From Hyalangium minutum (GTDB lineage: Bacteria > Myxococcota > Myxococcia > Myxococcales > Myxococcaceae): a DNA stretch of 64,000 bases. Within the stretch, counting starts at the first letter, position 1; the number at the start of each line of letters is the position of its first letter. The translations under genes were made by a program, and so were the position numbers. Location: positions 933,509 to 997,508 of the forward strand of contig NZ_JMCB01000001.1 of the NCBI RefSeq assembly GCF_000737315.1, in the 5' to 3' direction. The notes under the pieces are model-generated. The model was not told where the DNA came from. It ran no database searches and saw only the letters and a program-made list of their open reading frames with translations. This document shows, one piece after another, positions 6,209-48,912 of this stretch.

Positions 6209-6330
6209 TACTTCGAAAGAAAAGCATTGGGGTCTTGAAGAAAAATCGTCATTCACTCGTAGTGAAGCCTGCGGCCAGCCGCCAGCCCCTCCAACCCTTG
6301 CATCCTGGGGCGCGCGTCTGGCCAAGGACT

Positions 6331-6351
6331 CCCACTCAATTCCTGGGTGGG
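6331..6351 (+). promoter_or_regulatory. 5'-leader hairpin, conserved with the paralog leader at 45922-45946
   Basis: Stem CCCACTCA/TGGGTGGG with loop ATTCC, 21 nt before ATG 6373. Confidence 0.35.
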
Positions 6352-6372
6352 GTTGCACGAGGCAGAAGCCCC

Positions 6373-25181: not shown

Positions 25182-27371
25182 CTACGTCGACTCGCGGTCG
25201 CGGCTCTGCATGGCCTGGCTCGCCACCACATCCGCGGTGGTGAGGTCCATCGTCACCAACCGCCCGTCCTTGCGGGTGATCACCCGGGGCTCGCGCTGCC
25301 CCAGGCCGGCTACCAGGACGCGCAGGCTCTCGGGCGTGCCGTGGCTCTCCGCAGTGGCGTGCTCCCGCCACAGCTTCTCGAGTTCCACCATGGTGCGCTG
25401 CACCTGCGCGGGGTTCGGCTTCGCGCGCAGCGGCTCCAGCAGCTCCACCGTCCGCTTCGCGCCTTCGGGGGTGAGCCCCCAGAGCACGGCATTCCGGCGG
25501 ATCCCCACGCGGAGCAGCGTCCGCGCCCCCAGGGCATCTCCTTTCTGGGTGCGCGCGATGACCGTCCCCGCCAGCGCTCGGGCCGTCCGGCAGGCCACGC
25601 GCTGGAGATAGCCCACGCCTCCGAACTGGTAGTGCCCCGTGAACAACCCGCTCGCGGCGAGCTGCCCCAGGACTCCGGGCTGAGAGAGCGAGACCGCCTC
25701 AGGAGGGATGAGCGACAGCAGCGAGGGCTCCCCGTGCGCCTGGGCGTGCAGGGCCTGCCGCAGCAAGGACTGGCCCGCATGGGTGGCCCCCACCACATCC
25801 AGGCTCCCCAGACAGACCAGGGCCTCGTCGTTCAGCTCCGGGCAGAGCGGCCGCAGCACGCCTCGCAGCACGGCCACGTGCATGCACGCGATCAACATCT
25901 CCACGAGCGGCTCGGAGGCCCGCTCGAACGCTTCCCACGCGGCGCTCTCCTCCGGCTCCGGATCATAGAGGCTCTGCAGGTGCCGCAGCCGCGCGAAGCC
26001 CGGGACGCAGCGCTGCCGGGCCTCGCGCAGGGCTCCCGTGAGGGCCTCCGCCAGCTCCCGGGCTCCGGCGCTGTCTCCCTGAAGCGCGAGCGCGGCAGCG
26101 AGCTGCACGCCCCAGGCGGCCCCTCGAGGAGCGTGAGCGAGCTCCTGGGCCACGCTGGCAGCCAGCGCCCCCGCCTTGTGGGGGCCCTCGGACTGGAGGA
26201 GCCCGGAGATGAACGTCTGCGCCATCAGCCGCAGGGAGAGCGGCGCGAGCAGCTCGCCGGACCGGAGCAGCGCCCTGATGACGGCCTCTCGCTCCACCCC
26301 GAGGCCGAGCCACTCCCGCCCCAGGGTGCCCAGCCACGACTGAGAGCGCTCGATGACCGCGTGGCGGTAGGTGAGGCTGACCCCGACCCGCAGCGCCTGC
26401 TCGAGCCCAGCGGCTCGCCCCACGGCGCTCACACCGGCGCTCGCCAGGGCCTCGGCCTCCCCTGCTCCCGCCGAGACCAGCAGCTTCTCGAAGGCCTCCG
26501 CGCTGTTGGGACCCACTTGGATGGCCGTGCGCGAGACGAGCGCGGCGATCTTCTGGCGCTCCTCGGAGGTGCACGCGCCGACCTTGTCCGCGAGCGCTTC
26601 AACTTGGGGGCGGACCTGCTCCGAGAACAGCCGCCGGAACGCCTCTCCGCGCTCCGGGCCGAGCTGCAGGTTGAGGTGACGCATCAGGCTCACGGGAGGC
26701 TCGCCCTGGCGCTCCAGGTGCTCGATGAAGAGCGCCTTGTTCCGCGCCTGATCGTACTGAGACTCCTCGGGATCATCGCCGTGCAGGTAGGTGCGCACCG
26801 AGGCGGTCTCGAGCGAGTCCAGCTCATCATCCGGATGCCTCCGGCTCGCCGCGAGCACGGACGAGGCCGAGGCCTGCTTGCGCAGACGCTTCCGGGCCTT
26901 GCGCAGGCTGGCGCGCTTGAGCGCCGCGAAGGCCGCACCCAAGGTTCCCGCCAGCAAGGTCTTCGCGGAGGTAGGGCTGTCGGAGAGTTCACCCGCCTCC
27001 AGGCTGCCCGGCTCGTGCGAGGACTCCGACGACTCGCTCCGAACGGTCTCCTTGCGCCGGGCGGGGGCCTCACGCGCGGCGGGCTGCGAGGCGGAATCCA
27101 CCAGGCCGCGCACGAGCTGGCCCGCGAGCTTGCCTGCGGAGACGAAGGCCGAGCCGAACTGCTGGGCCACCTGCCGCGCATTGACGGGCGCCGGTGTGCC
27201 CGCGGCCTGCGGGGCCGGAGCGCCATGAGGCTCGGGCGCCGCCGGGGCGGGAGCGGCCGGTGCGGAGGAAGCTGGAGCCGACGGAGGGCTGACGGGCGCC
27301 GCGGGCCTGGGCGAGGCCGCAGGCCTCGGCAGAGGCACTCCGGGTGGAAGCGACGAGCCGATCTTCGCCAT
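25182..27371 (-). CDS. Hypothetical protein, Pro/Ala-rich N-terminus and large helical body
   Basis: 729-aa ORF with GC3 bias, apparently the last gene of the 30327-25182 minus-strand operon. Confidence 0.75.
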   Translation of the reverse strand: MAKIGSSLPPGVPLPRPAASPRPAAPVSPPSAPASSAPAAPAPAAPEPHGAPAPQAAGTPAPVNARQVAQQFGSAFVSAGKLAGQLVRGLVDSASQPAAREAPARRKETVRSESSESSHEPGSLEAGELSDSPTSAKTLLAGTLGAAFAALKRASLRKARKRLRKQASASSVLAASRRHPDDELDSLETASVRTYLHGDDPEESQYDQARNKALFIEHLERQGEPPVSLMRHLNLQLGPERGEAFRRLFSEQVRPQVEALADKVGACTSEERQKIAALVSRTAIQVGPNSAEAFEKLLVSAGAGEAEALASAGVSAVGRAAGLEQALRVGVSLTYRHAVIERSQSWLGTLGREWLGLGVEREAVIRALLRSGELLAPLSLRLMAQTFISGLLQSEGPHKAGALAASVAQELAHAPRGAAWGVQLAAALALQGDSAGARELAEALTGALREARQRCVPGFARLRHLQSLYDPEPEESAAWEAFERASEPLVEMLIACMHVAVLRGVLRPLCPELNDEALVCLGSLDVVGATHAGQSLLRQALHAQAHGEPSLLSLIPPEAVSLSQPGVLGQLAASGLFTGHYQFGGVGYLQRVACRTARALAGTVIARTQKGDALGARTLLRVGIRRNAVLWGLTPEGAKRTVELLEPLRAKPNPAQVQRTMVELEKLWREHATAESHGTPESLRVLVAGLGQREPRVITRKDGRLVTMDLTTADVVASQAMQSRDREST

Positions 27372-27939: not shown

Positions 27940-30327
27940 CTAGCGAGGCGAGGTGAGCAGGTCTGGGATGTCCGTCTTGGCGTACCGGCCCACAGCCCAC
28001 GACGCGATGCCCGCCCCGAGCCCGACGACGGCGCCCACCACGGTGCCGGGCCCGGGGACAATGCTGCCCGTGGCCGCTCCGGCGGCGATCCCCAGGCCAA
28101 TGACACCCGCGCCGACGCCAATCAAGGCCTGCGCCTGCTTGTAGCCATCATGGCCCGCGTTCGCGTAATCCATGGCGCCGGTGACCGCGCTCAGGCCCGC
28201 GCCCGCGAACCCCAGCCAGCGGGATGCAAACTGGCTGGCCCCCCTCAAGCCCCCCAGCTTCCCCGCGAAATAGTCGGCCGACTCAGCGGCCATGGCCTGT
28301 GGGTTGGCCAGCGTCCGCGCGGTCCGGACGGTGTTGTTCGCCCAGTCGGCCGTCCCCAGGGCGTTGCCCCCCAGTGCGAGCGAATCGCGCAGCACCTTCT
28401 CGGAGTTGCCCTCGCGCACGTTCTGGGCGAGGGACTGCACGTTGGAGATCGTGCTGGTCACCTGCGCCGCCAGCCCGATCGGGTTGGTGCCGAACTTCAG
28501 CCCGTTGAGGGCCGTGGTCCGATCCATGGCCTCGAGCGCCGTCTTGGGCAGGCCCAGGACGTTGTTCATGGTACCGAACGTCGTGCTCGCGGCGCTCGCC
28601 TGGGCGTTGTCCGCGGGGGTGGCCGGGCGCGGCCCCTCCGGACCCGCGAACCGCTGCAACTGGCCCACCATGGCCTCCTGCGCGCCCGTGGCCAGATCCC
28701 GCTGCTCGGACGTGAGGTGGCTGGCGTCGTTGACGGGCTGCCCGTTGACCGTGAGCGAGTACGGATCCACCTGCCGGTTGCCGTCCAGGCTCGCCTGCGC
28801 CACGTCGCCTCCCCTCCTCAGCGTCTCGGTGCCACGGACGAACTCCAGCCCCTGGTCTGTCACGCGGCTGGTGAGGTCCTCCCGCATGTTCACCGGCTCT
28901 TGGCCCGGCTCGAAGCGGGTGCTCTCCGTCGTCTCATTCACCTCCAGCCCTTGCGCCGTCTGCTGCTGCGTGCGGGTGTAGTCACCAACCTGGCGCACCC
29001 CGTTCTCGTCGGTGGCGTCCGTGTGGCGGCGATCCACCTGACCATCGGCGCCGTAGGTGGAGTTGGTGGTCTGGCTCGCCCCGCGCATCTGCTGGTTCTC
29101 ATCCTCCCACTGCGTCCGCTCCTCCTGCGTCACGTTGGCGCCCTCGGCGCGGCTGTAGCTGACGTGCTGGTAGGTGCTCACGCCCTCCACCACGTCGTTC
29201 TGCCGCATCTCGTTGGGAGAGATCTGCTTCTGGAGCGACCAGGCGCGGGGCTGCTGCTGGCCGTCGGCCCCCGTCACGTCCGAGGACGTGGCACGCACGC
29301 CGTCCTGCGAGTAGGAGACGTCACGGGCGCGCTCGGTGGTGCCATTCGCGTGGGTGACGGTGGTGTGGGTCTCCACCACGTCCACGGGACGGTTTGCGTC
29401 GAACTCCCCTTGCAGGTTGCCGTGGATGCCCTGGGTGGCCTGATCTTCGGGAGGCAGTTCCCCTTCCACGAGCGGCCGGTTGAGCGGCTCGTTGGGCTGC
29501 TGCACTCGGAAGGCTCTCGTCGAGTCCGTCACATTGTCGGCGTTGGATGCCACGGTGCGCTCGCTGAGCCCTCCTCCCTCCTGGCGGGTCCAGGTCCGGC
29601 TGTTGGTGGAGACGGCCGGATCCCTCTGGGCCTGGAGTTCCTGCTGGCTCGGCGGCGGCGGGGGCTGCTGGCTGGGAGGCTGGTGCCAGGTGGCCGTCTC
29701 GGAGGTGGTCTCCTGGGGACTGACGCGGACGGACGTGCGGTTCGCCGTGCCATCCGGTGCGTAGGTGGTGTCATCCACCGAGAGCCGATCTCCCGCCTGC
29801 TCGGACGAGCGCGTGCGGGTGACGTTGCCCTGGCCATCGCGCTCCGTCACGGTGACGCGGTTGCCCTCGCGCTGGACGTTGGGATCCGGAGGAACCTGGT
29901 TGGCACGGGCCTGATCCTCTCCGGCGATGCGCTGCGCGTCCTGCTGGGTGGCGTTCTGCGCGGCATCGACCTGGGCCCGGTCGTCGGTGACTTCATGAAC
30001 CTGGACAGCATCCTGGGCGCCCTGGACCGCGCGCGGATCCGCGGGAGGCGGCGTCGAAGTGGGCGTGGAGGCCGGGGTCGCCCCGGGGCCACTGCCAGGC
30101 GCGCCAAACCCCTGCGTCGGGGGCGCGGAGGGTTGCGCGGACGTCGGGTTCAGCGAGAGCGCGGCAGAGGCATTCGTGGGCGAAGCTTGCTGGGGCTGCT
30201 GCGGCGGCGGGGGCTGCTGCTGAGGAGGCTGCTGGAACGTATCCTTGGGAGGAGGAGGCGGCGGCTGGGGAGGCGTCGGCGGGGGCGGGGGCGGCGGCGG
30301 CGGCGGCGGCGGGATCCGAATCGACAT
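27940..30327 (-). CDS. Putative secreted effector: poly-Pro/Gln N-terminus, Thr/Gln-rich core, hydrophobic Gly-zipper C-terminus
   Basis: ATG 30327 (MSIRIPPPPPPPPP) with GGGAG RBS. C-terminal ALIGVGAGVIGLGIAAGAATGSIVPGPGTVVGAVVGLGAGIASWAV. Confidence 0.75.
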   Translation of the reverse strand: MSIRIPPPPPPPPPPPPTPPQPPPPPPKDTFQQPPQQQPPPPQQPQQASPTNASAALSLNPTSAQPSAPPTQGFGAPGSGPGATPASTPTSTPPPADPRAVQGAQDAVQVHEVTDDRAQVDAAQNATQQDAQRIAGEDQARANQVPPDPNVQREGNRVTVTERDGQGNVTRTRSSEQAGDRLSVDDTTYAPDGTANRTSVRVSPQETTSETATWHQPPSQQPPPPPSQQELQAQRDPAVSTNSRTWTRQEGGGLSERTVASNADNVTDSTRAFRVQQPNEPLNRPLVEGELPPEDQATQGIHGNLQGEFDANRPVDVVETHTTVTHANGTTERARDVSYSQDGVRATSSDVTGADGQQQPRAWSLQKQISPNEMRQNDVVEGVSTYQHVSYSRAEGANVTQEERTQWEDENQQMRGASQTTNSTYGADGQVDRRHTDATDENGVRQVGDYTRTQQQTAQGLEVNETTESTRFEPGQEPVNMREDLTSRVTDQGLEFVRGTETLRRGGDVAQASLDGNRQVDPYSLTVNGQPVNDASHLTSEQRDLATGAQEAMVGQLQRFAGPEGPRPATPADNAQASAASTTFGTMNNVLGLPKTALEAMDRTTALNGLKFGTNPIGLAAQVTSTISNVQSLAQNVREGNSEKVLRDSLALGGNALGTADWANNTVRTARTLANPQAMAAESADYFAGKLGGLRGASQFASRWLGFAGAGLSAVTGAMDYANAGHDGYKQAQALIGVGAGVIGLGIAAGAATGSIVPGPGTVVGAVVGLGAGIASWAVGRYAKTDIPDLLTSPR

Positions 30328-30383
30328 TGCTCTCCCTGTCGGTAGGTAGGCACAGCGCGCCGGGACGGGCACGCTGTAGGGAG

Positions 30384-37341: not shown

Positions 37342-37445
37342 GGCCTACCCGCCCAGGCGCTTCCTTGAATTACCAATTCCACGGGAATATACGGCTTTCT
37401 CTGGTTTGGCGGCATGGAGCCGCCTTCTGTCGCGAGGAAGCCCGG

Positions 37446-39353
37446 ATGCGCACTCGACTGCTGGCAGCCTGTCTCACGCTCTCACTCACGGCTTGCGAAG
37501 GAGGGGCACCGGAACCGCGCCAGGAGCCGGAGGTGCAGGACGCGGCGCCCTCCTCCACGCAGGATCTCCAGTCCGCGCTCTCCGCGCTGCCCGGGACCGA
37601 GGTGGCTGGCACTCACGAGGACGGAGTGCCGTTCATGATCCGCGGGCCGCTCGGCACGGTGGAGCGCTCGCTGCGCGCCGCCACGGCCCAGGAGGCTCAC
37701 ACCCAGGCGAGCGCCGCGCTGGCCAAGGTGGCCCCGGTGTTCCGCCTGCGCGCTTCGGATCTCGTCGCGAAGCGAATCACCCGGGATGAGCAGGGGCACA
37801 CGCACCTGCGCTATGCGCAGACGCGCAACGGCCTGCCCGTGGTGGGACAGGAGCTCATCCTCCACATCGACGAGCAGGGGCGCGTCTACGCGGCCAACGG
37901 CTCCGCGCGGGATGGAGAGAGTGTCCCCTCCCCGAGCCAGGCCCGCCTGGCCTCCGAGTCCGCCACCGCCGCCGCCCTGAAGTCGACGCTGGGCGGTATG
38001 TCCACCGAGGGCACGCCGCGCCTCGTCTACGTCCGCGCCGACGCGGACCAACGCCTCACGCTGGCCTTCGAGGTGCTCGTGACGGGCGAGTCCCCTGAGA
38101 AGCCCGTCCGGGACCATGTGTTCATCCACGCGCTCGACGGCTCGGTGGTGGCGCGGTTCTCGGACATCCACGAGGCGCGCAACCGGCTGGTCTACTCGGC
38201 GCGGTACGGAACCACCGTGCCCGGCACCCTCGCGCGCAGCGAGGGAGGCGCGGCGACTGGGGACACCGTGGTGGACACGACCTACGACAACCTCGGCATC
38301 TTCTACGACTGCTTCTACGGGCTGTTCGGCCGGGACTCGTACAACAACGCGGGCGCCCCGCTGAGGGCCGTCGTGCACTACAGCCGGAACTACGCCAGCG
38401 CCTTCTGGAACGGCAGCTACCTGGTCTGCGGCGATGGGGATGGCACGACGATGGCCTCGCCCTGCGCGGACTCGGACGTCGTCGTCCACGAGTACACCCA
38501 CGCCGTCACGGACTACGAGTCGGGCCTGACGTACTCGGGGGAGTCCGGAGGCCTGAGCGAGAGCTACTCCGACATCTTCGCCTCCGTCTGCGAGAGCCGC
38601 ACGCGCGGCTTCGTGCTGCCGGATCCGGACGCCTTCAAGATCGCCGAGGACATCTGGACGCCCACCACCCCGGGCGACGCGCTCCGCTACCTGAATGATC
38701 CGAAGCAGGATGGAGTCTCTCTGGACTACTACGCGGACTACACCTCGAGCGTGGACGTGCACTACAGCTCGGGCATCCCCAACCTGGCCTACTCGCTGCT
38801 GGCACAGGGCGGGACGCACCCGCGGGGCCGCTCCATCATCAGCGTGACGGGGATCGGCGTGGAGAAGGCGGGCCGCGTCTTCTACCGGGCCAACACGGAC
38901 TACATGACGGCGACGACGACGTTCGCGCAGGCCAAGGTGTACACGGAGCAGGTGGCCACGGTGCTGGGCTACCCGGTGGCCTCGGTGACGGCGGCGTGGC
39001 AGGCCGTGGGCGTGGGCGTGACGGCGCCTCCGGTGACGAGCACTCCGCTCCACGTCGGCGTGACGACCACGGGCCTGTCGGGCGCCTCGGGCTCGCAGGC
39101 GTACTTCCACCTGGATGTGCCGACCAACAAGCCGGTCACCTTCACGCTCAGCAGCGGCACGGGTGACGCGGACATGTACGTGAAGTTCGGCTCGGCGCCG
39201 ACCACCAGCTCGTACGACTGCCGCCCGTACCTCTCCGGCAACAACGAGACGTGCAGCATCGCCGCGAAGACGACCTCGGGCCGCTACTACGTGATGCTGC
39301 GGGGCTACAGCGCGTACTCGGGTGTCTCGCTGCTGGGCCAGTACACGCCCTGA
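37446..39353 (+). CDS. M4 (thermolysin-family) metalloprotease with FTP/PepSY propeptide and C-terminal PPC domain
   Basis: HEYTH zinc motif, GGLSESYSD and VHYSSGIPN. PPC domain GDADMYVKFG...CRPY. Lipobox LSLTAC. Confidence 0.95.
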   Translation: MRTRLLAACLTLSLTACEGGAPEPRQEPEVQDAAPSSTQDLQSALSALPGTEVAGTHEDGVPFMIRGPLGTVERSLRAATAQEAHTQASAALAKVAPVFRLRASDLVAKRITRDEQGHTHLRYAQTRNGLPVVGQELILHIDEQGRVYAANGSARDGESVPSPSQARLASESATAAALKSTLGGMSTEGTPRLVYVRADADQRLTLAFEVLVTGESPEKPVRDHVFIHALDGSVVARFSDIHEARNRLVYSARYGTTVPGTLARSEGGAATGDTVVDTTYDNLGIFYDCFYGLFGRDSYNNAGAPLRAVVHYSRNYASAFWNGSYLVCGDGDGTTMASPCADSDVVVHEYTHAVTDYESGLTYSGESGGLSESYSDIFASVCESRTRGFVLPDPDAFKIAEDIWTPTTPGDALRYLNDPKQDGVSLDYYADYTSSVDVHYSSGIPNLAYSLLAQGGTHPRGRSIISVTGIGVEKAGRVFYRANTDYMTATTTFAQAKVYTEQVATVLGYPVASVTAAWQAVGVGVTAPPVTSTPLHVGVTTTGLSGASGSQAYFHLDVPTNKPVTFTLSSGTGDADMYVKFGSAPTTSSYDCRPYLSGNNETCSIAAKTTSGRYYVMLRGYSAYSGVSLLGQYTP

Positions 39354-39370
39354 CGCAGTCACGGGCTGAG

Positions 39371-39406
39371 GCGGCTCCGGATCCTGCTGTTGCGGCCCGG
39401 AGCCGC
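39371..39406 (+). terminator. Hairpin after the M4 protease gene
   Basis: 10-bp inverted repeat GCGGCTCCGG...CCGGAGCCGC. Confidence 0.5.
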
Positions 39407-39426
39407 CGGGTACAGTCCGCAGCCGC

Positions 39427-42400
39427 ATGCAGCCCCAGGCCGACGTCATCATCCTCACCGCGCTGAAGGAGGAGTACGACGCCGTCTTGGAGGTCAGCAC
39501 TGGCGCCCTCCCTGGGAGCACCTGGGAGACAGAGCTCAGAGATGACGGGCAGACCGTCTCCTTCCGCTCTTTTCAAGGGACTCGCGGTGGGGAGCTTCGC
39601 GTGGCGGTGCTCCAGGCTCCAGCCATGGGAGGCGTGGCGGCCGTGGGCGCCATCGCGCCTCTGGTGGAGCCCTACAAGCCCCGGTGCCTGGCCATGTGCG
39701 GCGTCTGCGCGGGGAATCCCGGTGTGGTGGAGCTCGGGGACGTCATCGTCGCGGATGTGCTCTGGGACTACGATCAGGGGAGGGCCGAGCGCACGGTCAC
39801 GGACTCGGGAGCCACGGTCGAGCGCGTCCAGGGCCGACGCCTCTCCTATCTGCTGAAGGCTCGCTGGAAACGAGCGGCGGTGCCCTTCGTTCCACCCGGC
39901 GCGGACTCCTGGCTGAAGCTGCGGCCCCGCTCCTCCCAGGACTCGGCGGAGAAGCCGTTCCGAGTCCATGTGGGCCCCCTGGCCACGGGCACGAAGGTGC
40001 AGCGGGGACCGGGGATCTTCGAGCGGCTGATCCAGGAGGATTACAAGGTGCTCGGGCTGGAGATGGAGGCTGCGGCGCTCGCGGCCTTCGCTCACGAGCA
40101 CGAGCTCCCCCACCTCGTGATGAAGGGGGTCATGGACTTCGCGGACTCGGCGAAGAATGACCGCTTCAAGGCCTTCGCCGCGCGGGCTTCCGCCGAGTGC
40201 CTCGTGGCATTCTTGCGAGAGAACCTGCCGGCAGGTCCCGCGGACGCAGCCATCTCGGAAGAGGCGCTGGCCGCCTACAAGCGCGCCCTCGTCGAGCAGT
40301 CCTCCGTGCCTCACCTGGAACTCCACGGGCTCGCGAACATCGAGCCTGGCTCGCGGGAGATGAAGCTGGAGCTGCTCAAGTTCGCGGTGGCGCCCTCGCT
40401 GCATGACGGAGCCCATGCGGCCAGCCGCCGAGAGCTGGAGATCCAAGAGCAGCTGGCCCGCGGAGTGGAGGATCCCGTCCAGAGGCACGCACTCGCCCAA
40501 GAGCGCGAGCAACTCATGGATGCGCGGTGGGACTATTACGCGGTCCGAGGCAAGGAGCACATCAGGCCCCATTCCTTCGCGCAGGTGCTGTCCCGGCACG
40601 AGCGGCTCGTCATCGTCGGAGATCCCGGAGCGGGCAAGAGCATCCTCCTTCGCCTGGCACTGCTGGCTTGCGATGAAGGTCCTCTGGGACAAGATGCCCG
40701 GCAGCTCCTGGGAGAGGAAGATCTCTTCAACGATCAGTCGCTCGGCGCACTCAAGGCGCTGCGCAGACTGCTCCCCGTGCCCATCAAGCTGGGCAGGCTA
40801 GGAGAGGCACTGAAGAAGGAACGTGGCCTGTCGCTGGAGGAGTTCATCCGCCGCCACCTCGGCCAGCATCGCGCGAGCAAGAAACTCCTCGGCAGCCTCC
40901 CGTTTCTGCTCAACACGGGGCGAATCTTCCTGCTGTGCGATGGGCTGGACGAAGTGGCGGAGGAGCTCCGGGAGCGCGTGGTCCAGAGAGTGACGGCACT
41001 GCTCGAGCAGTATCCAGACGTCCGGCTCCTGCTAACCACCCGTCCCTATGGCTACCGCCCACGAGTTCCCGGCCTGGAGCATGCCCGGCTTGCCGCACTC
41101 AGCTCCTGGCAGCAGCAAAAGCTCGTGTCGCGCCTGCATGTCCTCGTGGAGGGGGGACAGTCTGGCGAAGCGGCGGGAGCGGCACGCGCGCGCCAGCGAA
41201 CGAGGGCCTTGCTGCGCTCGGTCCATACGCGGCCCGAGTGGCAGACGCTCAGCAGCAACCCGCTGCTGCTCACCTTGTCCGCGCTGACCCGCACCGACCA
41301 AGGGGCCCTGCCTCGGCACCGGGTGATCGTCTACAACAACTTCGTCACGACACTCCTGGCGGAGTGGCGCTCCGCGGTCCCCTTGAAGAAGGCCCAGCAA
41401 CTGCTGGCGGCCTGGGCCTCCGTCGCCTTCGAGCTGGTGCGCCAGGAGAAGCACCTGGGCATCGCGAAGGCCCACCTGCTGCGGATGCTCGCGGACACCC
41501 AGCACACACCGCCGAAGAGGGCTCAGAGCTTCGCGGAGACCGCGCTCCAGCTCGCGCTCGAGAGGGGGCTCGTGCGCGAGGAGGAAGAGACCGTCTCATT
41601 CTGGCACCGGACCTTTGGCGAATTCCTGGCCGCGTATGCCCTCACGGGCACGGACGAGCAGGGGGCCGCGAGCCGTATCCTCGAAGCAGGCCCGCTCCCC
41701 CTCCCCGTCCTTCAGTTCGCGGCGGCACGGCTCGACCATGTGCTCCACGCCCGCCCGCAAGCCGATGCTCTCGCGCGGGGATTGCTCGCCCAGGACGAGC
41801 GAGCCCCCGGACGGCTGCTGCGGCCGGGGCTGCGCCAAGTCTCTGCCTGTCTCACGGATGGAGTCTCCTTCTCCCAAGAGCTGGTCGAGCGCGTCTGGAC
41901 CTCGTGGGCCGAGCTGCTCGCACAGACTGCGCCCTCCCGGGCCTGGAGCCAGTTCAGGCCGCTCACGCAGGCGGCCCTGCCGCGCACGCTGCCGGCCGCT
42001 CTCGTGGAGCGCTTCGCCCGCCTGCCGGATCGAGGTCTGTACGAGATCCATCATGGGACGTCCCTCCTCGTGGCCCGGCTGGCCCGGGAGGCACCTGACG
42101 CCGCGCGCGAGGTGTGCACGCGGTGGATGAACGCCCAATCCTCCCTGGCAGGAACCCAGAAGTTTCACGGCGCCATCGGCCTTGCTTCTCTCGGGCAATG
42201 GAGTGACGAAGTCATCGCCGCTCTGGGCGAGTTCCGCGAGGTCCTGAAGCTGGGCGTGGAGATCCTCGCGCAGCAAGTTCGCGACGGCGGCCCGGTGTTG
42301 AGGGAGCGGCTCCTGACGCTGGCGCAGGCCCGGATCCCCGGGGACGACCCTTCCATGGGGAAGCCAGCCCCCTCGGATCTGCCCACCGCCCGAACCCAAG

Positions 42401-45400
42401 AGCATGAGCGCGTGGTCGAGCGAAGGCTCTCCGCGGCGGTCCTCCTCGCGATCTCCGGGACGTGGGAGGAAAACGGAGCCTGGGTGCTGCACAGGGCGCT
42501 CTCAGGAAAGGAGAGCCCGTCCCGGCTGGACGAACTCAAGGGGGTGCTCCTGCACTGCGCCACGGCGGCCCCCGTGCAGGCGAGCCTCCTTGAATGGATC
42601 TGCGACGGCCAGCTCCTGGGCGACAACGCCCGGCAGCTCGTCCGCGAGGTCGCGGCCTTGGTGGAGGACCTGCCCCAGCAGGTGCTGGAGAGGTTTGCGC
42701 AAGCCGAAGGGACGGTGCAGGAGCAGCTGGAGGAATTGCTCGTCCAGGTGGGAACAGAGCGGCGCTCCCTGCTCGACCTCCTGTGGGGTTGGTTGGAGGA
42801 TCCTCAGGAGGAACGCCGGGTGCGCGCGGCCCGCCTCCTGCGCAAGCTCGCCCGGCATGAGCCGCGGTACCACGAGGCGCTGCGGCGTGGCATGCAGGCT
42901 CCCGAGCCGGTATGGCGCGTCCGTTGGGCCTACGCGTCGTTTTCCCTCAACCCGGAACTCTCGAAGCGAGCACTGGCCACACTGCAAGACTGTGCGCGCT
43001 CCCCGGATCCCGCTGTGCTTGAGGCCGTTTACGGGAGAAACAAGGCGCTTGATTGCGTCAGGTGGGAGGGAGTCCCGGCGCTGGAAGGCTGGCTCGCCTG
43101 TGCACTGGACCCCACCGTGCCAGACGCGGCGAGGCTCCGAGCGGCCCAGCTCGTCATGTATGCGAAAGAGAGCTGGGAGCCTGTGAGGGAGATCTTTTAC
43201 GCCCTGCTGGACTCCGAGGATTCGCTGGTGCGGCACAGTGCGGCGATCGAGCTATTCTTGCGAGCGCCCTCGGACATGCGCGTATCTCTGATGGCGGCGG
43301 AGAGGGCCGCACAGACGGACGGCTGCCGAAGGCTCAAGATGGGCCGTGAAAAACTGGAGGCCTGCGCCCGGGAGGCCGTGCAAGCCATCCTGAGAGGCCT
43401 CCCGCGCCAAGCGGTGTCGAAGCCACCTGATAGGTCCTGGGGAGTTCAATCCGATTGGAGCGCTCTCCTCGCGGAGCTCGTGACGCAGGATCTGCCGGCC
43501 GCGGCCCCTCTGATCCAGAACTTGAACCAACCCGGAGTGGCTGGCGAAGCGGCGGAGGCCGCACTCGAAGAGCTGGCGCGCAAGCACCCCTTTGTGCGAG
43601 CAGCGATCGGCGAGCGCCTGCGTCAGGCCGTGGCCGCCCCCCACCCGCTCGAGCTGCAGCGCCTCGTGAGGCTGGGCCTCCTGCATGGAGAACTTCAGCC
43701 CTTGGCCATCCCCGCGAGCCGGGGGCTCGATCCCCACACCCTGTCTCCGGGTGAGGCCTCATGGCTGGCCAAGCTCTTGAAGTCGGCGCACGCGGACGAG
43801 GACGCGCTCCGCTTCTGGCGGAGCGCGCTCGAGGGAGCGAGGGCCGTGGACACCCTCGAGGCCGCGGCAGAGCTCGCGGTGTACTTTCCAGGAGAAGCGG
43901 GGCCCTGGATTCAAGGAGCCATCGCGCGGCTGCTCGGCTCGCCCGAGCCCTCTCTCCGCTTGGATGCGGCGCGGCTCGCGCTGCTGTGTGGCGTGCACGA
44001 GGAGGGTGCCGTCCAGGTGCTCATCGGCTGTCTGGAGCTGCGCGAATCCCTTCATCGGGCGCCCGATAAGCGCCTCAACCTTCTGGAACTCCTCGAAGGC
44101 CGCGCGTTCGATCGCCGCGCGGAACACAAGCTGTTGCAGGAGTCCTCCCGGTCGAACATTCGCACCGAGTTCCTGGCGATGCAGACGCTCTACCTTCATC
44201 GGCCCGCTCGAGGCGCGACGATCCTGGAGCAGTGGCTCGGCGCCGAGTCGATGGAGCACTTCCAGTACGCTGTGGAAGCTCTCACGGCGCGCGGCCACTC
44301 GGGCGAGCGGGTATCCGCGGCGCTGATGGAGCGCCTGCGCTCCGCTCCCAAGGCACAGCTTGTGACGCTGATGCACCTCGCGCACGAGCAGAAGGCCTCC
44401 CCAAAAGAAGTCCTGGAGCGGCTGCTCGCGCGTCATGGTGGCGATCCCGAGGGGGGCTTGGTGGATGTGGCGCTCATCAACTGGCTCTATCGGCACCCCA
44501 CTCTCTGGGCCGAGCTGCGGCGGCAGCCTCCGGAGCTGCGCGAGTCCTTCAGGATCCTGCTCTACAACGATCCCTTCGTGACCCGCGACACCGTCGCCTT
44601 CACTGTCGAGCGTGCACTCGCGCAGAACGACATCCTGAACGTCAATGTCTGGGAGAGCGCTGTCAGCATCTGGTGTCGGCATCCCAAGGGAGAGTCAGAG
44701 GAACACCCGCGCCCTTCCCGGCGCATCGAGACGGCAGCCCCTGAGCAGGTACGTGGCTGGCTTCAGGAGCTGCTCCCCCAGGAGCCCCTCCCCAGCACCC
44801 TCGAAGGGCTGTCGTGCTTCGACCGGCTCGCTGAGCTGGCAGAGCTGCCTCTGGACCACCGTCTCCCCGTTTTGAAGCGCGCACTGGAGATCGACCTCGG
44901 CGCACGGGCGCACGAGCCCACCTATCCCTGGCGTCTCGAACTGCAGGCCACCGCCGCGCTCCGGGTGTTGAAGCTCGGAGGCTCCCATGGCCGACTCCTG
45001 CCCATTCTCCAGCGAGCTGTCGATGACCTGCGATCGCCGTGGGGGCCCAATGCCTTTCCGTTCGCGAGCGCACTGCTGACGTACTGGCCGAACGACATCA
45101 CGCGGAGGCAGTTCGTCCTCCGCACGGCCCTCGCTGAAGACAACGGCTTCAGCACCGACCAACTGCTGGTGCTCCTGGAGATGGCCCAGCTCCCACAAGA
45201 GGAGCGCATCTCCCTGCTCTGCCTGTGCCTGGGACTGCAGCCCCGCGCGACGCTGCCCACCTGTGTCCCCTCCGCGAGCGCCGCTTGGAGAGAGCACGCT
45301 CCCAGCCTGTTTGCCGCCCTCGAGAACCTCGGCTGCGACAAAGCGCGCCTTGCGTCCCTCCTCCATGAGTTCGTCTCCACCTATGGAACGAAGCTCTCGG

Positions 45401-45858
45401 CGCAGGCCCAACGGGCGCTGCTCGATCGGCCTGAACTCACCGCAGCGAGTTCCGCGAAGCTGCTGGCAGGAGTGCTCCTGGAGAGGCCCTACGACGCAGA
45501 CCCTCCAGGCCAGCGGTGGCTGGAGCGATTCGCCTCGAAGCGGCCCCAAGGTGAAGAGCGCTCTCTCTTGGAGCGCCACTGGGATTCGGACTCCCTGTCG
45601 ACCCACCTGAAATGGCTGGCGGACTTCTCCCAAGCGGATGAGCCGGAGCCGGTGGAGCAAGCGCTCTGCGAGCTCACAGGCGTGGACTCCCCGCTCTACC
45701 GTCAGGCCCGCCAGCGCCACGCCCTCTCCGACGCGCAGTGGAGCCAGTTGCTCGAGCAACTCGCGCTCGCGCCCGAAGAGCCGAAGGCCTCTCAGTTCGC
45801 CAAGGAGTGGCTCCTCATGAGCCTGTGGCGCACATGGGAATCACCGGCAGCCGTGTAG
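39427..45858 (+). CDS. NLR-like protein: N-terminal purine nucleoside phosphorylase (MTA/SAH nucleosidase) domain, NACHT NTPase and long helical/HEAT-like sensor
   Basis: PNP motifs ILTALKEE, MCGVCAG, GDVIVAD, LEMEAAA and KGVMDFAD. Walker A GDPGAGKS, Walker B LLCDGLDEV, TTRP and NPLLL. Confidence 0.88.
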   Translation: MQPQADVIILTALKEEYDAVLEVSTGALPGSTWETELRDDGQTVSFRSFQGTRGGELRVAVLQAPAMGGVAAVGAIAPLVEPYKPRCLAMCGVCAGNPGVVELGDVIVADVLWDYDQGRAERTVTDSGATVERVQGRRLSYLLKARWKRAAVPFVPPGADSWLKLRPRSSQDSAEKPFRVHVGPLATGTKVQRGPGIFERLIQEDYKVLGLEMEAAALAAFAHEHELPHLVMKGVMDFADSAKNDRFKAFAARASAECLVAFLRENLPAGPADAAISEEALAAYKRALVEQSSVPHLELHGLANIEPGSREMKLELLKFAVAPSLHDGAHAASRRELEIQEQLARGVEDPVQRHALAQEREQLMDARWDYYAVRGKEHIRPHSFAQVLSRHERLVIVGDPGAGKSILLRLALLACDEGPLGQDARQLLGEEDLFNDQSLGALKALRRLLPVPIKLGRLGEALKKERGLSLEEFIRRHLGQHRASKKLLGSLPFLLNTGRIFLLCDGLDEVAEELRERVVQRVTALLEQYPDVRLLLTTRPYGYRPRVPGLEHARLAALSSWQQQKLVSRLHVLVEGGQSGEAAGAARARQRTRALLRSVHTRPEWQTLSSNPLLLTLSALTRTDQGALPRHRVIVYNNFVTTLLAEWRSAVPLKKAQQLLAAWASVAFELVRQEKHLGIAKAHLLRMLADTQHTPPKRAQSFAETALQLALERGLVREEEETVSFWHRTFGEFLAAYALTGTDEQGAASRILEAGPLPLPVLQFAAARLDHVLHARPQADALARGLLAQDERAPGRLLRPGLRQVSACLTDGVSFSQELVERVWTSWAELLAQTAPSRAWSQFRPLTQAALPRTLPAALVERFARLPDRGLYEIHHGTSLLVARLAREAPDAAREVCTRWMNAQSSLAGTQKFHGAIGLASLGQWSDEVIAALGEFREVLKLGVEILAQQVRDGGPVLRERLLTLAQARIPGDDPSMGKPAPSDLPTARTQEHERVVERRLSAAVLLAISGTWEENGAWVLHRALSGKESPSRLDELKGVLLHCATAAPVQASLLEWICDGQLLGDNARQLVREVAALVEDLPQQVLERFAQAEGTVQEQLEELLVQVGTERRSLLDLLWGWLEDPQEERRVRAARLLRKLARHEPRYHEALRRGMQAPEPVWRVRWAYASFSLNPELSKRALATLQDCARSPDPAVLEAVYGRNKALDCVRWEGVPALEGWLACALDPTVPDAARLRAAQLVMYAKESWEPVREIFYALLDSEDSLVRHSAAIELFLRAPSDMRVSLMAAERAAQTDGCRRLKMGREKLEACAREAVQAILRGLPRQAVSKPPDRSWGVQSDWSALLAELVTQDLPAAAPLIQNLNQPGVAGEAAEAALEELARKHPFVRAAIGERLRQAVAAPHPLELQRLVRLGLLHGELQPLAIPASRGLDPHTLSPGEASWLAKLLKSAHADEDALRFWRSALEGARAVDTLEAAAELAVYFPGEAGPWIQGAIARLLGSPEPSLRLDAARLALLCGVHEEGAVQVLIGCLELRESLHRAPDKRLNLLELLEGRAFDRRAEHKLLQESSRSNIRTEFLAMQTLYLHRPARGATILEQWLGAESMEHFQYAVEALTARGHSGERVSAALMERLRSAPKAQLVTLMHLAHEQKASPKEVLERLLARHGGDPEGGLVDVALINWLYRHPTLWAELRRQPPELRESFRILLYNDPFVTRDTVAFTVERALAQNDILNVNVWESAVSIWCRHPKGESEEHPRPSRRIETAAPEQVRGWLQELLPQEPLPSTLEGLSCFDRLAELAELPLDHRLPVLKRALEIDLGARAHEPTYPWRLELQATAALRVLKLGGSHGRLLPILQRAVDDLRSPWGPNAFPFASALLTYWPNDITRRQFVLRTALAEDNGFSTDQLLVLLEMAQLPQEERISLLCLCLGLQPRATLPTCVPSASAAWREHAPSLFAALENLGCDKARLASLLHEFVSTYGTKLSAQAQRALLDRPELTAASSAKLLAGVLLERPYDADPPGQRWLERFASKRPQGEERSLLERHWDSDSLSTHLKWLADFSQADEPEPVEQALCELTGVDSPLYRQARQRHALSDAQWSQLLEQLALAPEEPKASQFAKEWLLMSLWRTWESPAAV

Positions 45859-45921
45859 GTGCGACCTTTCCCGCTACACCCCAGATCCATGAATTGCGTA
45901 AATGCGCTGGGCCGAAAGGCC

Positions 45922-45946
45922 GCCGTCCTCAATCCCTGAGGGCGGC
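45922..45946 (+). promoter_or_regulatory. 5'-leader hairpin, conserved with the paralog leader at 6331-6351
   Basis: Stem GCCGTCCTCA/TGAGGGCGGC with loop ATCCC, 23 nt before ATG 45970. Preceded by a GGCC-GAAA-GGCC hairpin. Confidence 0.35.
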
Positions 45947-45969: not shown

Positions 45970-48912
45970 ATGACGATCGTGGACTTTCGTACCGCGCCCG
46001 CTCACCGCAGGATCGTCTCACCCCGCTGGCTCATCCTGTGCGCCGTGCTGGCAGCGTGCAGCCCCGCTACTCCTGAAGCACCCTCCGAAGCGCCTCCCGT
46101 TTCCCAGACACAGCCCCTCACCGGGACTCCCGAGCTGTCGCCCGAGTTCGCCGTGAACCCGGCCGCCTCGAACCCCACGCATCAGGAGGGCGCCGTGGTG
46201 GCGGCCGGCAATGGCCTCTACCTCGTGGTGTGGATGGACACCTCCGATACACACAGCCCGGACATCTACGGCGTGCGCATCCGGGCCTCGGATGGCGAGC
46301 GGCTGGATACCTCGCCGCTGCTCATCGGCACGGGCTCCACCACCCAGTATCAGCCTGCCGTCGCCTTCGACGGCGTGAACTTCCTGGTGGTCTGGACCGA
46401 TATCCGCAGCGTCCCTGCCATCTACGGCGCCCGGGTGCGGGCCTCGGATGGCGTGGTGCTGGATACCTCGCCGTTCCTGATCAGCCGCACGCCCATGGGG
46501 CCGTACCAGCTTCCCCAGTTCAGCCCGGCGGTGGCCTTCGACGGGACGTACTACCTGGTGACGTGGCACGGCAATTACTACGAGAACGGCCCGGTCAGCA
46601 CCGGCGTGCAGAGCATCCGCGTGCGGACGGACGGCACCTTCATCGACGCCTCCAGCGCTCTGCTCGCCCGGGACGGCAGCAACTCGCGCGTGGCCTACGT
46701 GGACGGCATCTACCTGGTGGCCTGGCAGAAGAACCAGAACGTCGAGGCCATGCGCATCCGCGCCAACTCGATGACCCGGCTGGACACCACGCCCATCTCC
46801 CTGGCGGCGACGTCCGGCAACGAGAACAGCCCCGCGGTGGCCGGGCAGAACGGCGAGTTCCTGGCGGTGTGGATCGGCGCGGACAACGCCCTGTGGGGCC
46901 GCCGGCTGAACGCCGAGACGGGCGCCAAGCTGGGCTCGGCGGACTTCTCCGTGGGCCCGGCGGCGCTGGCCCCGCCTGAGGTGACCTTCGACGGCGAGAA
47001 CTACCGCGTGCTGTGGCAAGCCACCCGCGAGGGGGCTCGCAAGGTGCTGACGACGCGAGTGGCGCGAGATGGGACGGTGGCGGCGGACACGGAGCTCCTG
47101 CTTGCGGACCCCTCCTCCGCGCAGGCCCTGCGCGGGGGCATCGCCGCGGCGGGCTCGAATCTCTACCTCGCTGCCTATACGGCGTACGACACCGCGCTCT
47201 CCAAGTCCCGCGGCCGCTTCCGGCTCGTGACGGAGGGCCCGTCCAACGTCTCTCCGGAGCTCGCCGTGAGTCTGGCCCCCACCGGCACGCAACACCTCGA
47301 GACGGCGGCCGCGGCGGGCAATGACCTGTACCTGGTGGTCTGGTCCGAGGTGAATTCCACGTCGGGCAACCGGCCGGACATCCTCGGGGTGCGCGTGCGG
47401 GCCACGGACGGCGCGCTGCTGGATGCCACGCCGCTGCGGATTGGCACCTCGGTGCCCTCGGCGGACCTCTCGCCGGCGGTGGCCTTCGATGGCACGAACT
47501 TCCTGGTCGTCTGGGAGGGCATCGACGCCGTCCCGCTCATCTTCGGCGCTCGGGTGCGGGCCTCGGATGGCGCGGTGTTGGATGCCACGCCGCTGCTGAT
47601 CAGCCGCCCGGCCGTGGGGGCCTCCGTGGGCCTGCCCCAGTTGCATCCCGCGGTGGCCTTCGATGGGACGAACTACGTGGTGGCGTGGCAGGGCCTCTGG
47701 TACACGAGCGACTCCGTCGACTCGGGCGTGCAGGCCATCCGCGTGCGGCCGGACGGCACCTTCCTTGACACCAACGCCACGATCGTCGGCCCGGGCGGTA
47801 GCGACGCTCGCGTGGCCTCGACGAACGGCATCTCCCTCGTGGCCTGGACCCAGAACACGGATGTCCAGGCGGCCCGCCTCAATGGCGCGACGGGGCAGTT
47901 GCTGGATGCCTCGCCGCTCTCCGTGGCGGCGACCTCCGCCTGGGAGGTGAACCCTGCGGTGGCGGCCCACAACGGGGAGTTCCTGGTCGCCTGGACCAGC
48001 GGCGCGGACCTGCGGGCCCGGCTGCTGAGGGCCTCGGATGGCGCCCTGCTGGGCACGTCGGACTTCCTCGTGGGTCCGTCCGTTCAGGCGCCCGCGGACG
48101 CGACGTTCGACGGGCAGGACTACCGGATCAGCTGGCAGGCCACGAGGAGCGGGGGCCGCACGCTGGTGAGCACGCGCGTGTCCGCGCAGGGCGTCGTCGA
48201 TGCGGACGCGGAGCTCTCGCTGTCGCGGGTGCATACCTCCGCGGGGACGTACCGGGGCAACATCGCGGCGGTGAGCCCGGGCCAGCTCCTGGTGAGCTAC
48301 TCGCAGTTCGACGCAATGGTGCAGAAGACGCGCGCCCGGGCGCGGCGGGTGAGCGACCCGCGGCTGGGAAGCGTGCCGCAGATGCCGGAGACGTGCAGCG
48401 AGGCGGGTGCGCCCATCCTGGTGCTGACCGCGTCCTCGCCGCTGACGCTGGAGTGCGGCTCGGGCCCGTACATCGAGCCGGGTGCGAGGGCCGTGGACGC
48501 GTGCGGCAACGCGATCGAGGTGCACGCGTACAACACGGGCGCGGACTCGTCCGGGCCGGGCCCCAACCTGCGCTACGAGGGCACGTACTCTGTCTCGTAC
48601 GCGGCGTGGGACGCGCTGGGCCAGACGGTGACCGCGACCCGGGAGGTGATCGTGGATGACCGGAGGCCGCCGACGCTGACGCTCCTGGGCGACGCGCACA
48701 TGACGCACACGTGCGGCAGCCAGTGGCAAGAACCCGGCTGGCGGGCGACGGACGAGTGCTACGCGAATGTGTCGGCGCAGGTGCAGCGCACGGGCGAGGT
48801 GAACGGCTGGGCAGCAGGCACGTACACGGTGACCTACTCGCTGACGGACGCGGGCGGCAACAGCGCCACGCCGATCACGCGCACCGTGGATGTCGTGAAC
48901 TGCCCCTGGTAG
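45970..48912 (+). CDS. Secreted/lipoprotein with duplicated F/Y-LVVW repeat domain and Ig-like (DUF5011-type) tail
   Basis: AVLAAC lipobox. Two copies of the domain that is single in 6373..8226. Ends ITRTVDVVNCPW. Confidence 0.82.
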   Translation: MTIVDFRTAPAHRRIVSPRWLILCAVLAACSPATPEAPSEAPPVSQTQPLTGTPELSPEFAVNPAASNPTHQEGAVVAAGNGLYLVVWMDTSDTHSPDIYGVRIRASDGERLDTSPLLIGTGSTTQYQPAVAFDGVNFLVVWTDIRSVPAIYGARVRASDGVVLDTSPFLISRTPMGPYQLPQFSPAVAFDGTYYLVTWHGNYYENGPVSTGVQSIRVRTDGTFIDASSALLARDGSNSRVAYVDGIYLVAWQKNQNVEAMRIRANSMTRLDTTPISLAATSGNENSPAVAGQNGEFLAVWIGADNALWGRRLNAETGAKLGSADFSVGPAALAPPEVTFDGENYRVLWQATREGARKVLTTRVARDGTVAADTELLLADPSSAQALRGGIAAAGSNLYLAAYTAYDTALSKSRGRFRLVTEGPSNVSPELAVSLAPTGTQHLETAAAAGNDLYLVVWSEVNSTSGNRPDILGVRVRATDGALLDATPLRIGTSVPSADLSPAVAFDGTNFLVVWEGIDAVPLIFGARVRASDGAVLDATPLLISRPAVGASVGLPQLHPAVAFDGTNYVVAWQGLWYTSDSVDSGVQAIRVRPDGTFLDTNATIVGPGGSDARVASTNGISLVAWTQNTDVQAARLNGATGQLLDASPLSVAATSAWEVNPAVAAHNGEFLVAWTSGADLRARLLRASDGALLGTSDFLVGPSVQAPADATFDGQDYRISWQATRSGGRTLVSTRVSAQGVVDADAELSLSRVHTSAGTYRGNIAAVSPGQLLVSYSQFDAMVQKTRARARRVSDPRLGSVPQMPETCSEAGAPILVLTASSPLTLECGSGPYIEPGARAVDACGNAIEVHAYNTGADSSGPGPNLRYEGTYSVSYAAWDALGQTVTATREVIVDDRRPPTLTLLGDAHMTHTCGSQWQEPGWRATDECYANVSAQVQRTGEVNGWAAGTYTVTYSLTDAGGNSATPITRTVDVVNCPW

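Follow-up and report, generated by a model that had tools for sequence, protein, structure and literature searches.

A PNP-NACHT-solenoid gene of Hyalangium minutum encodes a candidate NLR-type conflict receptor

The window analyzed here, a stretch of 64,000 nucleotides from Hyalangium minutum (NCBI RefSeq assembly GCF_000737315.1, contig NZ_JMCB01000001.1, positions 933,509 to 997,508 of the forward strand), carries a gene for a protein that joins an N-terminal nucleosidase-type (PNP) domain, a NACHT NTPase and a very long helical solenoid. We regard it as highly probable that this protein is a conflict receptor of the NOD-like receptor (NLR) type with an enzymatic death effector. The assignment is carried by the architecture, the intact motifs, the affinity of the PNP domain to an immune clade, the swapping of effectors within the family, its patchy rarity and the allelic divergence at the locus. 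The gene and its parts were located as follows.

39427..45858, forward strand: whole PNP-NACHT-solenoid gene, 2143 amino acids (aa), stop codon included (open reading frame list and translation)
39436..40221, forward strand: N-terminal PNP/nucleosidase effector domain, residues 4-265, with catalytic E16, E214 (LEMEA) and D237 (VMDFAD; codon 40135-40137)
40249..40566, forward strand: conserved adaptor at the effector-NTPase junction, residues about 275-380, alignable throughout the family regardless of the N-terminal domain
40567..41661, forward strand: NACHT NTPase module (nucleotide-binding domain, helical domain 1 and winged-helix domain), residues about 381-745, from Pfam NACHT and NPHP3_N, the invariant residues and Foldseek
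40618-40641, forward strand: Walker A motif GDPGAGKS, G398-S405
40930-40953, forward strand: Walker B motif LLCDGLDE, residues 502-509, with D505 and E509
41662..45855, forward strand: all-alpha HEAT/ARM-like solenoid, the presumed sensor, residues about 746-2143 (AlphaFold2 and Foldseek)

The open reading frame begins with ATG and runs through 2143 codons without interruption, and its GC content at third codon positions (0.82) was in line with that of the genuine genes of this 68% GC window. The adaptor opens the constant chassis of the family; the effector is swapped just upstream of it, and the family protein P0125 begins at the adaptor. The conserved motif AKEWLxxxLW closes the solenoid at residues about 2125-2134. 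The initial annotation of this DNA had proposed a tripartite NLR architecture of PNP, NACHT and solenoid, which was borne out here, with NOD2, NLRP3 and NLRC4 as the best structural matches.

Domain architecture and the nucleosidase-type effector

The N-terminal domain was matched by Pfam PNP_UDP_1 at residues 7-258 (E 9e-15, 55 bits against a cut-off of 25). E16 is the equivalent of E12 of the MTA/SAH nucleosidases (MTANs), E214 in LEMEA aligned to the EMEA of MTANs, and D237 in VMDFAD aligned to the catalytic Asp of MTANs (D197 in E. coli numbering). All three residues were 100% conserved among 115 PNP-STAND relatives, and the intact nucleosidase-type domain claimed initially was therefore confirmed.

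A comparison of scores favours a PNP domain of the Cap17/DtcC immune type and not a housekeeping MtnN. The PADLOC candidate-defence model PDC-M60C matched the domain with 128.5 bits and the PADLOC model for the 'PN-superfamily' effector of CBASS with 57.7 bits. The best NCBIfam match was the MtnN equivalog NF004079, at 54.1 bits against a cut-off of 169, and TIGR01704 scored 28.9 bits against 73.8, so that both models stayed below their cut-offs. The best MTAN of the PDB scored 44 bits, and the alignments to MTANs were partial. In contrast, BLASTP aligned residues 3-263 end to end with residues 146-399 of a DtcC-type protein of Klebsiella (30% identity, 102 bits, E 1e-29). The GxCAG and KxVxDFADS motifs were shared between the two proteins, and D237 in KGVMDFADS was paired with KSVSDFADS. 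As the PADLOC and DtcC-type scores were higher than the MtnN and MTAN scores, the earlier assignment of the nucleosidase domain to the Cap17/DtcC type is favoured.

The Klebsiella relative is encoded on an IncF plasmid as the third gene of a three-gene operon (1169, 157 and 409 aa) with integrases on both sides, which is the layout of Detocs. Judged by this three-gene layout and by the profile geometry, PDC-M60 presumably corresponds to Detocs. Other plasmid-borne PNP relatives included DtcC-like 'response regulators' in three-gene operons beside integrases, a SAVED-PNP protein, and an EAD1-PNP protein in a GTPase-associated conflict system. In Foldseek, the N-terminal domain was matched by MTA/SAH nucleosidases (TMt about 0.6), and the sequence and fold searches of the PDB with the PNP domain returned nothing but MTANs and a futalosine hydrolase; an apparent lack of Cap17/DtcC-type structures in the PDB would explain this result.

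The literature on PNP effectors cited in the initial annotation says what was claimed for it. Cap17, DtcC, and the fungal and sponge PNPs of the clade are ATP nucleosidases, which cleave ATP or dATP into adenine and (d)ribose-5'-triphosphate, and mutation of the equivalent Asp (Cap17 D472A or DtcC D353A) abolished defence (Rousset 2023, bioRxiv 10.1101/2023.01.24.525353). According to the same study, the Cap17 PNP clade has a statistical association with antiphage systems and also occurs at the N-termini of Avs/NLR-like proteins.

Variation within the PNP domain was also recorded. An extra insertion of about 60-70 aa, relative to residues about 165-178 of the window protein, was present in P0002 and P0004-P0011, was absent from the window protein, P0003 and P0012, and was similar but longer in P0066 and P0076. 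Myxobacterial genomes also contained many paralogous PNP-STAND-TPR proteins of about 1200-1700 aa, whose PNP domains were 40-58% identical to that of the window protein; one of these paralogues (P0088) is encoded on the same contig as the window gene.

The central module was matched by Pfam NACHT (33.4 bits, cut-off 26.7) and NPHP3_N (26.1 bits, cut-off 24.8) at residues 384-570, so that the NACHT NTPase with Walker A and B motifs described initially was recovered with all its motifs intact. G398, K404, D505, E509, the sensor R539, N611-P612 and the winged-helix H727 were invariant across the family (19 sequences). Because Walker A and B, R539, N611-P612 and H727 are invariant, an active NACHT that switches between ADP and ATP is to be expected from the sequence. 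Foldseek gave NOD2, NLRP3, NLRC4 and NLRP9 as the best matches of the central module (E 1e-10 to 1e-8).

AlphaFold2, run with a family alignment of 17-19 sequences, gave a predicted local distance difference test (pLDDT) score of 79 for residues 1-960 and 84 for residues 950-2143, and the latter region was modelled as a solenoid of about 65 helices. Foldseek returned only generic matches for the solenoid, namely mTOR, DNA-PKcs, TRRAP, karyopherins and CAND1, with template modelling (TM) scores below 0.3. Past residue 750 or so, Pfam gave only sub-threshold HEAT matches (HEAT_2, 16.6 bits against a cut-off of 27.7), and no TPR or WD40 match in the C-terminal 1400 aa or so. A self-BLAST of residues 701-2143 had no off-diagonal matches and thus detected no internal sequence repeats. 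The region of about 1400 aa without TPR or WD40 had been described initially as helical repeats, and this description holds for the modelled structure but not at the level of sequence. Neither the NACHT nor the solenoid had a match when the PDB was searched by sequence, be it with the single sequence or with a profile, and no DNA-binding output domain was found in the protein by Pfam.

Sensor family, effector exchange and allelic divergence

The family is small. A word-indexed search of 5.8 billion clusters recovered about 17 full-length relatives, and those that could be named all belonged to the Myxococcota (Archangium, Hyalangium and Corallococcus). An exhaustive phmmer search with the solenoid against 1.84 billion representatives returned 22 proteins, all of them proteins of about 2000-2250 aa with the same architecture, or fragments. 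The sensor was colinear across all relatives, at 28-69% identity. By these sequence searches the solenoid is an orphan sensor family, with no relatives outside about 22 myxobacterial proteins. The neighbourhoods of the homologues differed from genus to genus; because of this, and in view of the rarity of the relatives in both searches, the gene is not a syntenic core gene of the Myxococcales; being such a core gene is what the initial annotation had named as evidence against its antiphage reading. A scan of genome contigs with the sensor alignment used one peptide pattern and returned two loci, both already known, and is not usable as a census of distribution.

The N-termini joined to this constant part were of the following kinds.

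PNP N-terminus: 12 proteins
CHAT N-terminus: P0013 (E 4e-31)
Lon_C-like protease N-terminus: P0014-17 and P0128 (28 bits in P0128, above the cut-off)
Calcineurin-like phosphoesterase (Metallophos) N-terminus: P0121/P0123 (E 5e-13)
TIR_2/SEFIR N-terminus: P0124 (E 4e-14)
TIR_2 N-terminus: P0126/P0127 (E 9e-15)

A constant sensor and switch combined with exchangeable death or immune effectors is a hallmark of conflict systems of the Avs/bNACHT type.

Genes next to some family members were also noted. In front of the Lon-like members P0017 and P0016 lie genes that show translational coupling with a 4-bp overlap (L005:8613-10004 and L006:5747-8004, respectively); their products (463 and 523 aa) share 32% identity and have no Pfam match on record; L006 has an additional gene of 228 aa. 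The products of the coupled genes may be substrates or partners of the protease. No such coupled partner gene accompanies the PNP version in the window. The three-gene operon with P0016 sits inside a type VI secretion cluster (L006/L007:1-22273), flanked by VgrG and an Rhs/YD-shell toxin at one end and by FHA, ClpV, TssG and TssF at the opposite end. Further genes of the STAND or sensor type occur near two homologues: an 848-aa AAA_16/NB-ARC-like protein is encoded two genes upstream of P0004 (L009:5343-7889), and an FGE-sulfatase protein and a 476-aa unknown protein are encoded upstream of P0005 (L012:7434-9704). In both Archangium species, a gene for a 410-aa PLD-family protein (PLDc_2) precedes the PNP-NACHT gene by about 60-140 nucleotides (nt) in the same orientation (L002/L003:8627-9943); it may be a functional partner or lie there by chance.

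The same locus was found in two metagenome-assembled contigs, L010 and L011. Both carried the gene for the Ig-like surface protein downstream, and DAO and M4 protease genes upstream where the contig was long enough. The flanks were closely similar between the window and these contigs, with 92-95% amino-acid identity for the proteins, 88-99% nucleotide identity for the DNA, and synonymous (dS) and nonsynonymous (dN) divergence of 0.07-0.21 and 0.02-0.04, respectively, for the genes. The gene itself was far more divergent over most of its length, with 43-84% identity overall in its interior.

40393..45618, forward strand: hyper-divergent segment relative to the same locus in L010 and L011, nucleotide identity 53-83%

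The PNP part had 85-91% nucleotide identity, and the regions of the gene interior had 48-78% amino-acid identity, with dS of 0.4-0.8 and dN of 0.13-0.41. The three alleles were mosaic: the PNP part was closest between the window and L010 (86-90%), the NACHT was closest between the window and L011 (77-84%), and the solenoid was about equidistant in all allele pairs (43-60% in most 100-residue windows). The signal is thus one of deep allelic divergence with recombination, and not a demonstrated burst of adaptive change; since synonymous sites are deeply diverged as well, positive selection is not claimed. When JGI metagenomes were scanned for exact matches to the conserved hairpin of the 3' flank, there were 0 matches, and hence no further alleles and no empty site. 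An additional segment of about 73 nt directly follows the stop codon in the L010 and L011 alleles and is missing from the window (at 45859), while the hairpin and the other parts of the 3' spacer are conserved.

Immune receptors typically show allelic series of this kind, as do allorecognition genes, and the hypervariability fits an immune receptor and a receptor for allorecognition or kin discrimination equally well. As a tentative possibility that we regard as rather doubtful, the locus might be a bacterial counterpart of plant R-gene or fungal het series, in which several ancient recombining alleles of one NLR gene would persist in a myxobacterial population; their orphan solenoids, about 50% different from one another, would each serve a different variant of a foreign ligand (from a myxophage or a conspecific). 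The solenoid would then be a new family of pattern-recognition sensors combined with at least six death effectors.

Genomic context, proposed mechanism and alternative readings

The gene lies between an M4 protease gene (37365-39353) and a gene for an Ig-like surface protein (45970-48912), and a GC-rich hairpin was predicted in each of the two spacers.

39370..39407, forward strand: GC-rich hairpin between the stop codon of the M4 protease gene and the start codon, terminator-like and without a U-tract (RNA folding)
45922..45946, forward strand: GC-rich hairpin 3' of the stop codon (RNA folding), its sequence kept in L010 and L011

The folding energy was -43.7 kcal/mol (z -3.1) for the 73-nt upstream spacer and -45.8 kcal/mol (z -3.3) for the downstream spacer. 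The gene is monocistronic and stands alone between its neighbours, as had been stated initially. A scan for consensus promoters and terminators gave 0 sites, and both hairpins were without a U-tract; the terminator assigned earlier to the M4 protease gene is thus retained as a strong GC hairpin, but neither a U-tract nor the consensus scan marks it as a terminator. Further upstream are genes for an adhesin-like protein, a TPR protein, an MFS transporter, a YgiQ-type radical SAM enzyme and a DAO oxidoreductase. Beyond the Ig-like surface protein are a DUF2267 protein and a 1548-aa Kelch protein, and the rest of the window is likewise ordinary chromosomal DNA. Horizontal acquisition on a mobile element was rejected for this window: neither an integrase nor a transposase was present, a flanking tRNA was not noted, and the GC content of the gene was like that of its surroundings.

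Several other features of the window were recorded. Two genes (6235-8226 and 45970-48912) share a C-terminal Bact_surface_Ig-like domain, and the latter has internal DNA repeats, the 3' flank of L011 matching the window at 46413, 47374 and 47532. The AT skew was -0.272 at 28001-30000 and below 0.13 in absolute value elsewhere in the window. The skewed region overlaps an open reading frame on the reverse strand (27940-30372, 810 aa) without a Pfam match, and the neighbouring open reading frame on that strand (25182-27371, 729 aa) also has no Pfam match.

The mechanism that we favour is built by analogy with Avs, bNACHT and animal NLRs, from which we infer the ligand, the oligomerisation and the phenotype. 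At rest, an ADP-bound NACHT and the solenoid of about 1400 aa would keep the protein an inactive monomer. A foreign protein, most likely a conserved myxophage protein, would bind the solenoid directly and release autoinhibition, and this release would lead to the exchange of ADP for ATP and to oligomerisation. Enzymes of the PNP/MTAN fold act as dimers or higher oligomers, and for this reason the gathering of N-terminal PNP domains by oligomerisation would assemble active sites by proximity. The clustered PNP domains would lower the energy and dATP of the cell, and growth arrest or abortive infection would stop phage production. On balance, and by a narrow measure, we take this whole chain to be right, from binding of a foreign protein by the solenoid through NACHT oligomerisation and depletion of ATP/dATP by the clustered PNP to aborted infection. 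A phage is the presumed trigger and ATP the presumed substrate.

A number of observations weigh against this mechanism or parts of it. No Avs, NLR or NACHT model of PADLOC-DB v2 matched the NACHT or the solenoid at E <= 1; of the PADLOC check suggested initially, the match to the PNP domain (residues 4-265) was thus obtained, but not the match of an Avs/NLR model to the other two parts. The 64-kb window contained no known defence system, integrase or transposase, and defence systems or mobile genes were not consistently near the 10 homologous loci examined. None of the 50-codon sliding windows had a pN/pS ratio above 1 in at least two of the three allele pairs, and positive selection was not demonstrated. 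The orthologues of Archangium violaceum and A. gephyra were 84% identical, against 88-96% for their flanks, and have therefore diverged only mildly faster; hypervariability as a general property of the family was ruled out by this comparison. With regard to the effector, substrate specificity is not readable from sequence, and the substrate of PNPase-bNACHT proteins has been predicted to be NAD+ or other nucleotide derivatives (Kibby 2022).

The same NLR and nucleosidase machine might instead be triggered by a protein of a conspecific or competitor, such as a polymorphic toxin delivered by a type VI secretion system or by outer-membrane exchange, and would then serve kin discrimination or allorecognition like the fungal HET-type NLRs. 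The three divergent mosaic alleles with raised dS between flanks of 93-99% identity would suit such a role, as would the confinement of the family to the social Myxococcota and the absence of a defence-island context in the window. One Lon-type member lies within a type VI secretion/VgrG/Rhs cluster, and fungal NLRs with an N-terminal PNP are tied to allorecognition (Rousset 2023). However, the secretion context applies to that one member only, and a polymorphic partner gene is absent at the locus. The experimentally characterised bacterial STAND/NACHT sensors with death effectors all respond to phage proteins or phage-induced perturbation, and the statistical link of the PNP clade is to antiphage systems (Rousset 2023). 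We consider a conspecific trigger unlikely.

A regulator of programmed cell death or dormancy, in which the solenoid would sense a self signal (for example developmental lysis, starvation or proteotoxic stress), with the PNP either reducing adenylate pools or making a nucleotide-derived signal, is quite improbable. Myxobacteria undergo developmental lysis and are very rich in STAND proteins, among which are many PNP-STAND-TPR paralogues from the same genera and from the contig of the window; the chromosomal context of the gene is ordinary, and PNPase domains may yield nucleotide derivatives (Kibby 2022). Such a regulator should, however, be conserved and syntenic, whereas the gene is rare, patchy and hyper-divergent among close relatives, and in its relatives proteases, TIRs or a phosphoesterase take the place of its N-terminus, as is usual in conflict systems but not in a pathway dedicated to metabolism. 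We regard as very improbable a housekeeping-type MTA/SAH nucleosidase or a catalytically irrelevant domain in a MalT/AfsR-like STAND transducer without a killing role: although the PDB searches gave MTANs and the best NCBIfam match was the MtnN equivalog, its score was far below the cut-off (54 against 169 bits), on which ground a housekeeping MtnN was rejected, the MTAN alignment was partial while the DtcC-type alignment ran end to end at 102 bits, and there was no DNA-binding output domain among the domains found.

Significance and comparison with known systems

The general kind of protein is known from computational work, as PNP-NLR/Avs fusions (Rousset 2023) and as PNPase-bNACHT proteins with HEAT-type sensors (Kibby 2022), and the novelty assigned in the initial annotation was therefore too high. 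New here are the orphan solenoid sensor family of about 1400 aa, the exchange among six effector types, and the hypervariable locus with three alleles. Bacterial PNP-NLRs have been predicted, and we know of none that has been tested experimentally. The gene described here offers a clean single-gene test case for them, with K404A and D237A as clear mutants. As relatives of the sensor are confined to a small myxobacterial family, the ligand would widen the catalogue of bacterial NLR targets, and would do so in a phylum whose phages have been little studied. The three natural alleles between near-identical flanks are a ready-made specificity series; a difference in specificity between them would be direct evidence that a bacterial NLR undergoes balancing or diversifying evolution, in a way comparable to the NLRs of plants and fungi. 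Should the trigger be conspecific and not viral, bacterial NLRs would be linked to kin discrimination in a social bacterium.

Among bacterial proteins, the PNP-bearing Avs/NLR-like proteins (Rousset 2023, Fig. 2B) are alike in having an N-terminal PNP of the immune clade, a STAND NTPase and a C-terminal repeat sensor in a stand-alone gene, and their PNP is predicted to be a cell-targeting effector. They have TPR or FGE-sulfatase sensors, whereas the window protein has a NACHT-clade NTPase and a HEAT-like solenoid of about 1400 aa. The bNACHT proteins (Kibby 2022/2023, 'Bacterial NLR-related proteins protect against phage') likewise combine an effector, a NACHT and a repeat sensor; their N-terminal domains include PNPase, their C-terminal repeats include HEAT, and PNPase-NACHT was named a noteworthy untested case (Kibby 2022). 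The bNACHTs that have been tested are mostly short enterobacterial proteins, while the window protein has 2143 aa and matched no NACHT or Avs model of PADLOC. PNPase effectors in conflict systems of multicellular bacteria have also been described before (Kaur 2021).

The PNP domain is homologous over its full length to that of Detocs DtcC and CBASS Cap17, with which it shares the GxCAG, EMEA-type and KxVxDFADS motifs and the catalytic Asp. The mode of activation would differ, being NLR oligomerisation here, phosphotransfer in Detocs and binding of a cyclic oligonucleotide in CBASS. Detocs consists of the sensor kinase DtcA, the buffer receiver DtcB and a PNP protein with a receiver, but the window protein has neither a receiver nor a kinase neighbour. 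CBASS has a SAVED or cyclic-nucleotide-binding domain and an adjacent CD-NTase, neither of which was found in the window protein or in the window.

The fungal and metazoan PNP_UDP-NLRs (NLRN of Hyaloscypha variabilis; PNP-NACHT/NB-ARC NLRs of the Sordariales) share the PNP-NTPase-repeat architecture, and the PNP domain of NLRN is a toxic ATP nucleosidase (Rousset 2023). Diversity-enhancing evolution has also been described for fungal NLRs. These proteins are eukaryotic and have TPR, ANK or WD40 sensors, and orthology is not implied. The animal NLRs NOD2, NLRP3 and NLRC4 are the best structural matches for residues about 380-900, at a sequence identity of only 12-16%, and the winged-helix histidine (H727) is conserved; however, they have LRR sensors and CARD/PYD adaptor effectors, whereas the effector of the window protein is enzymatic.

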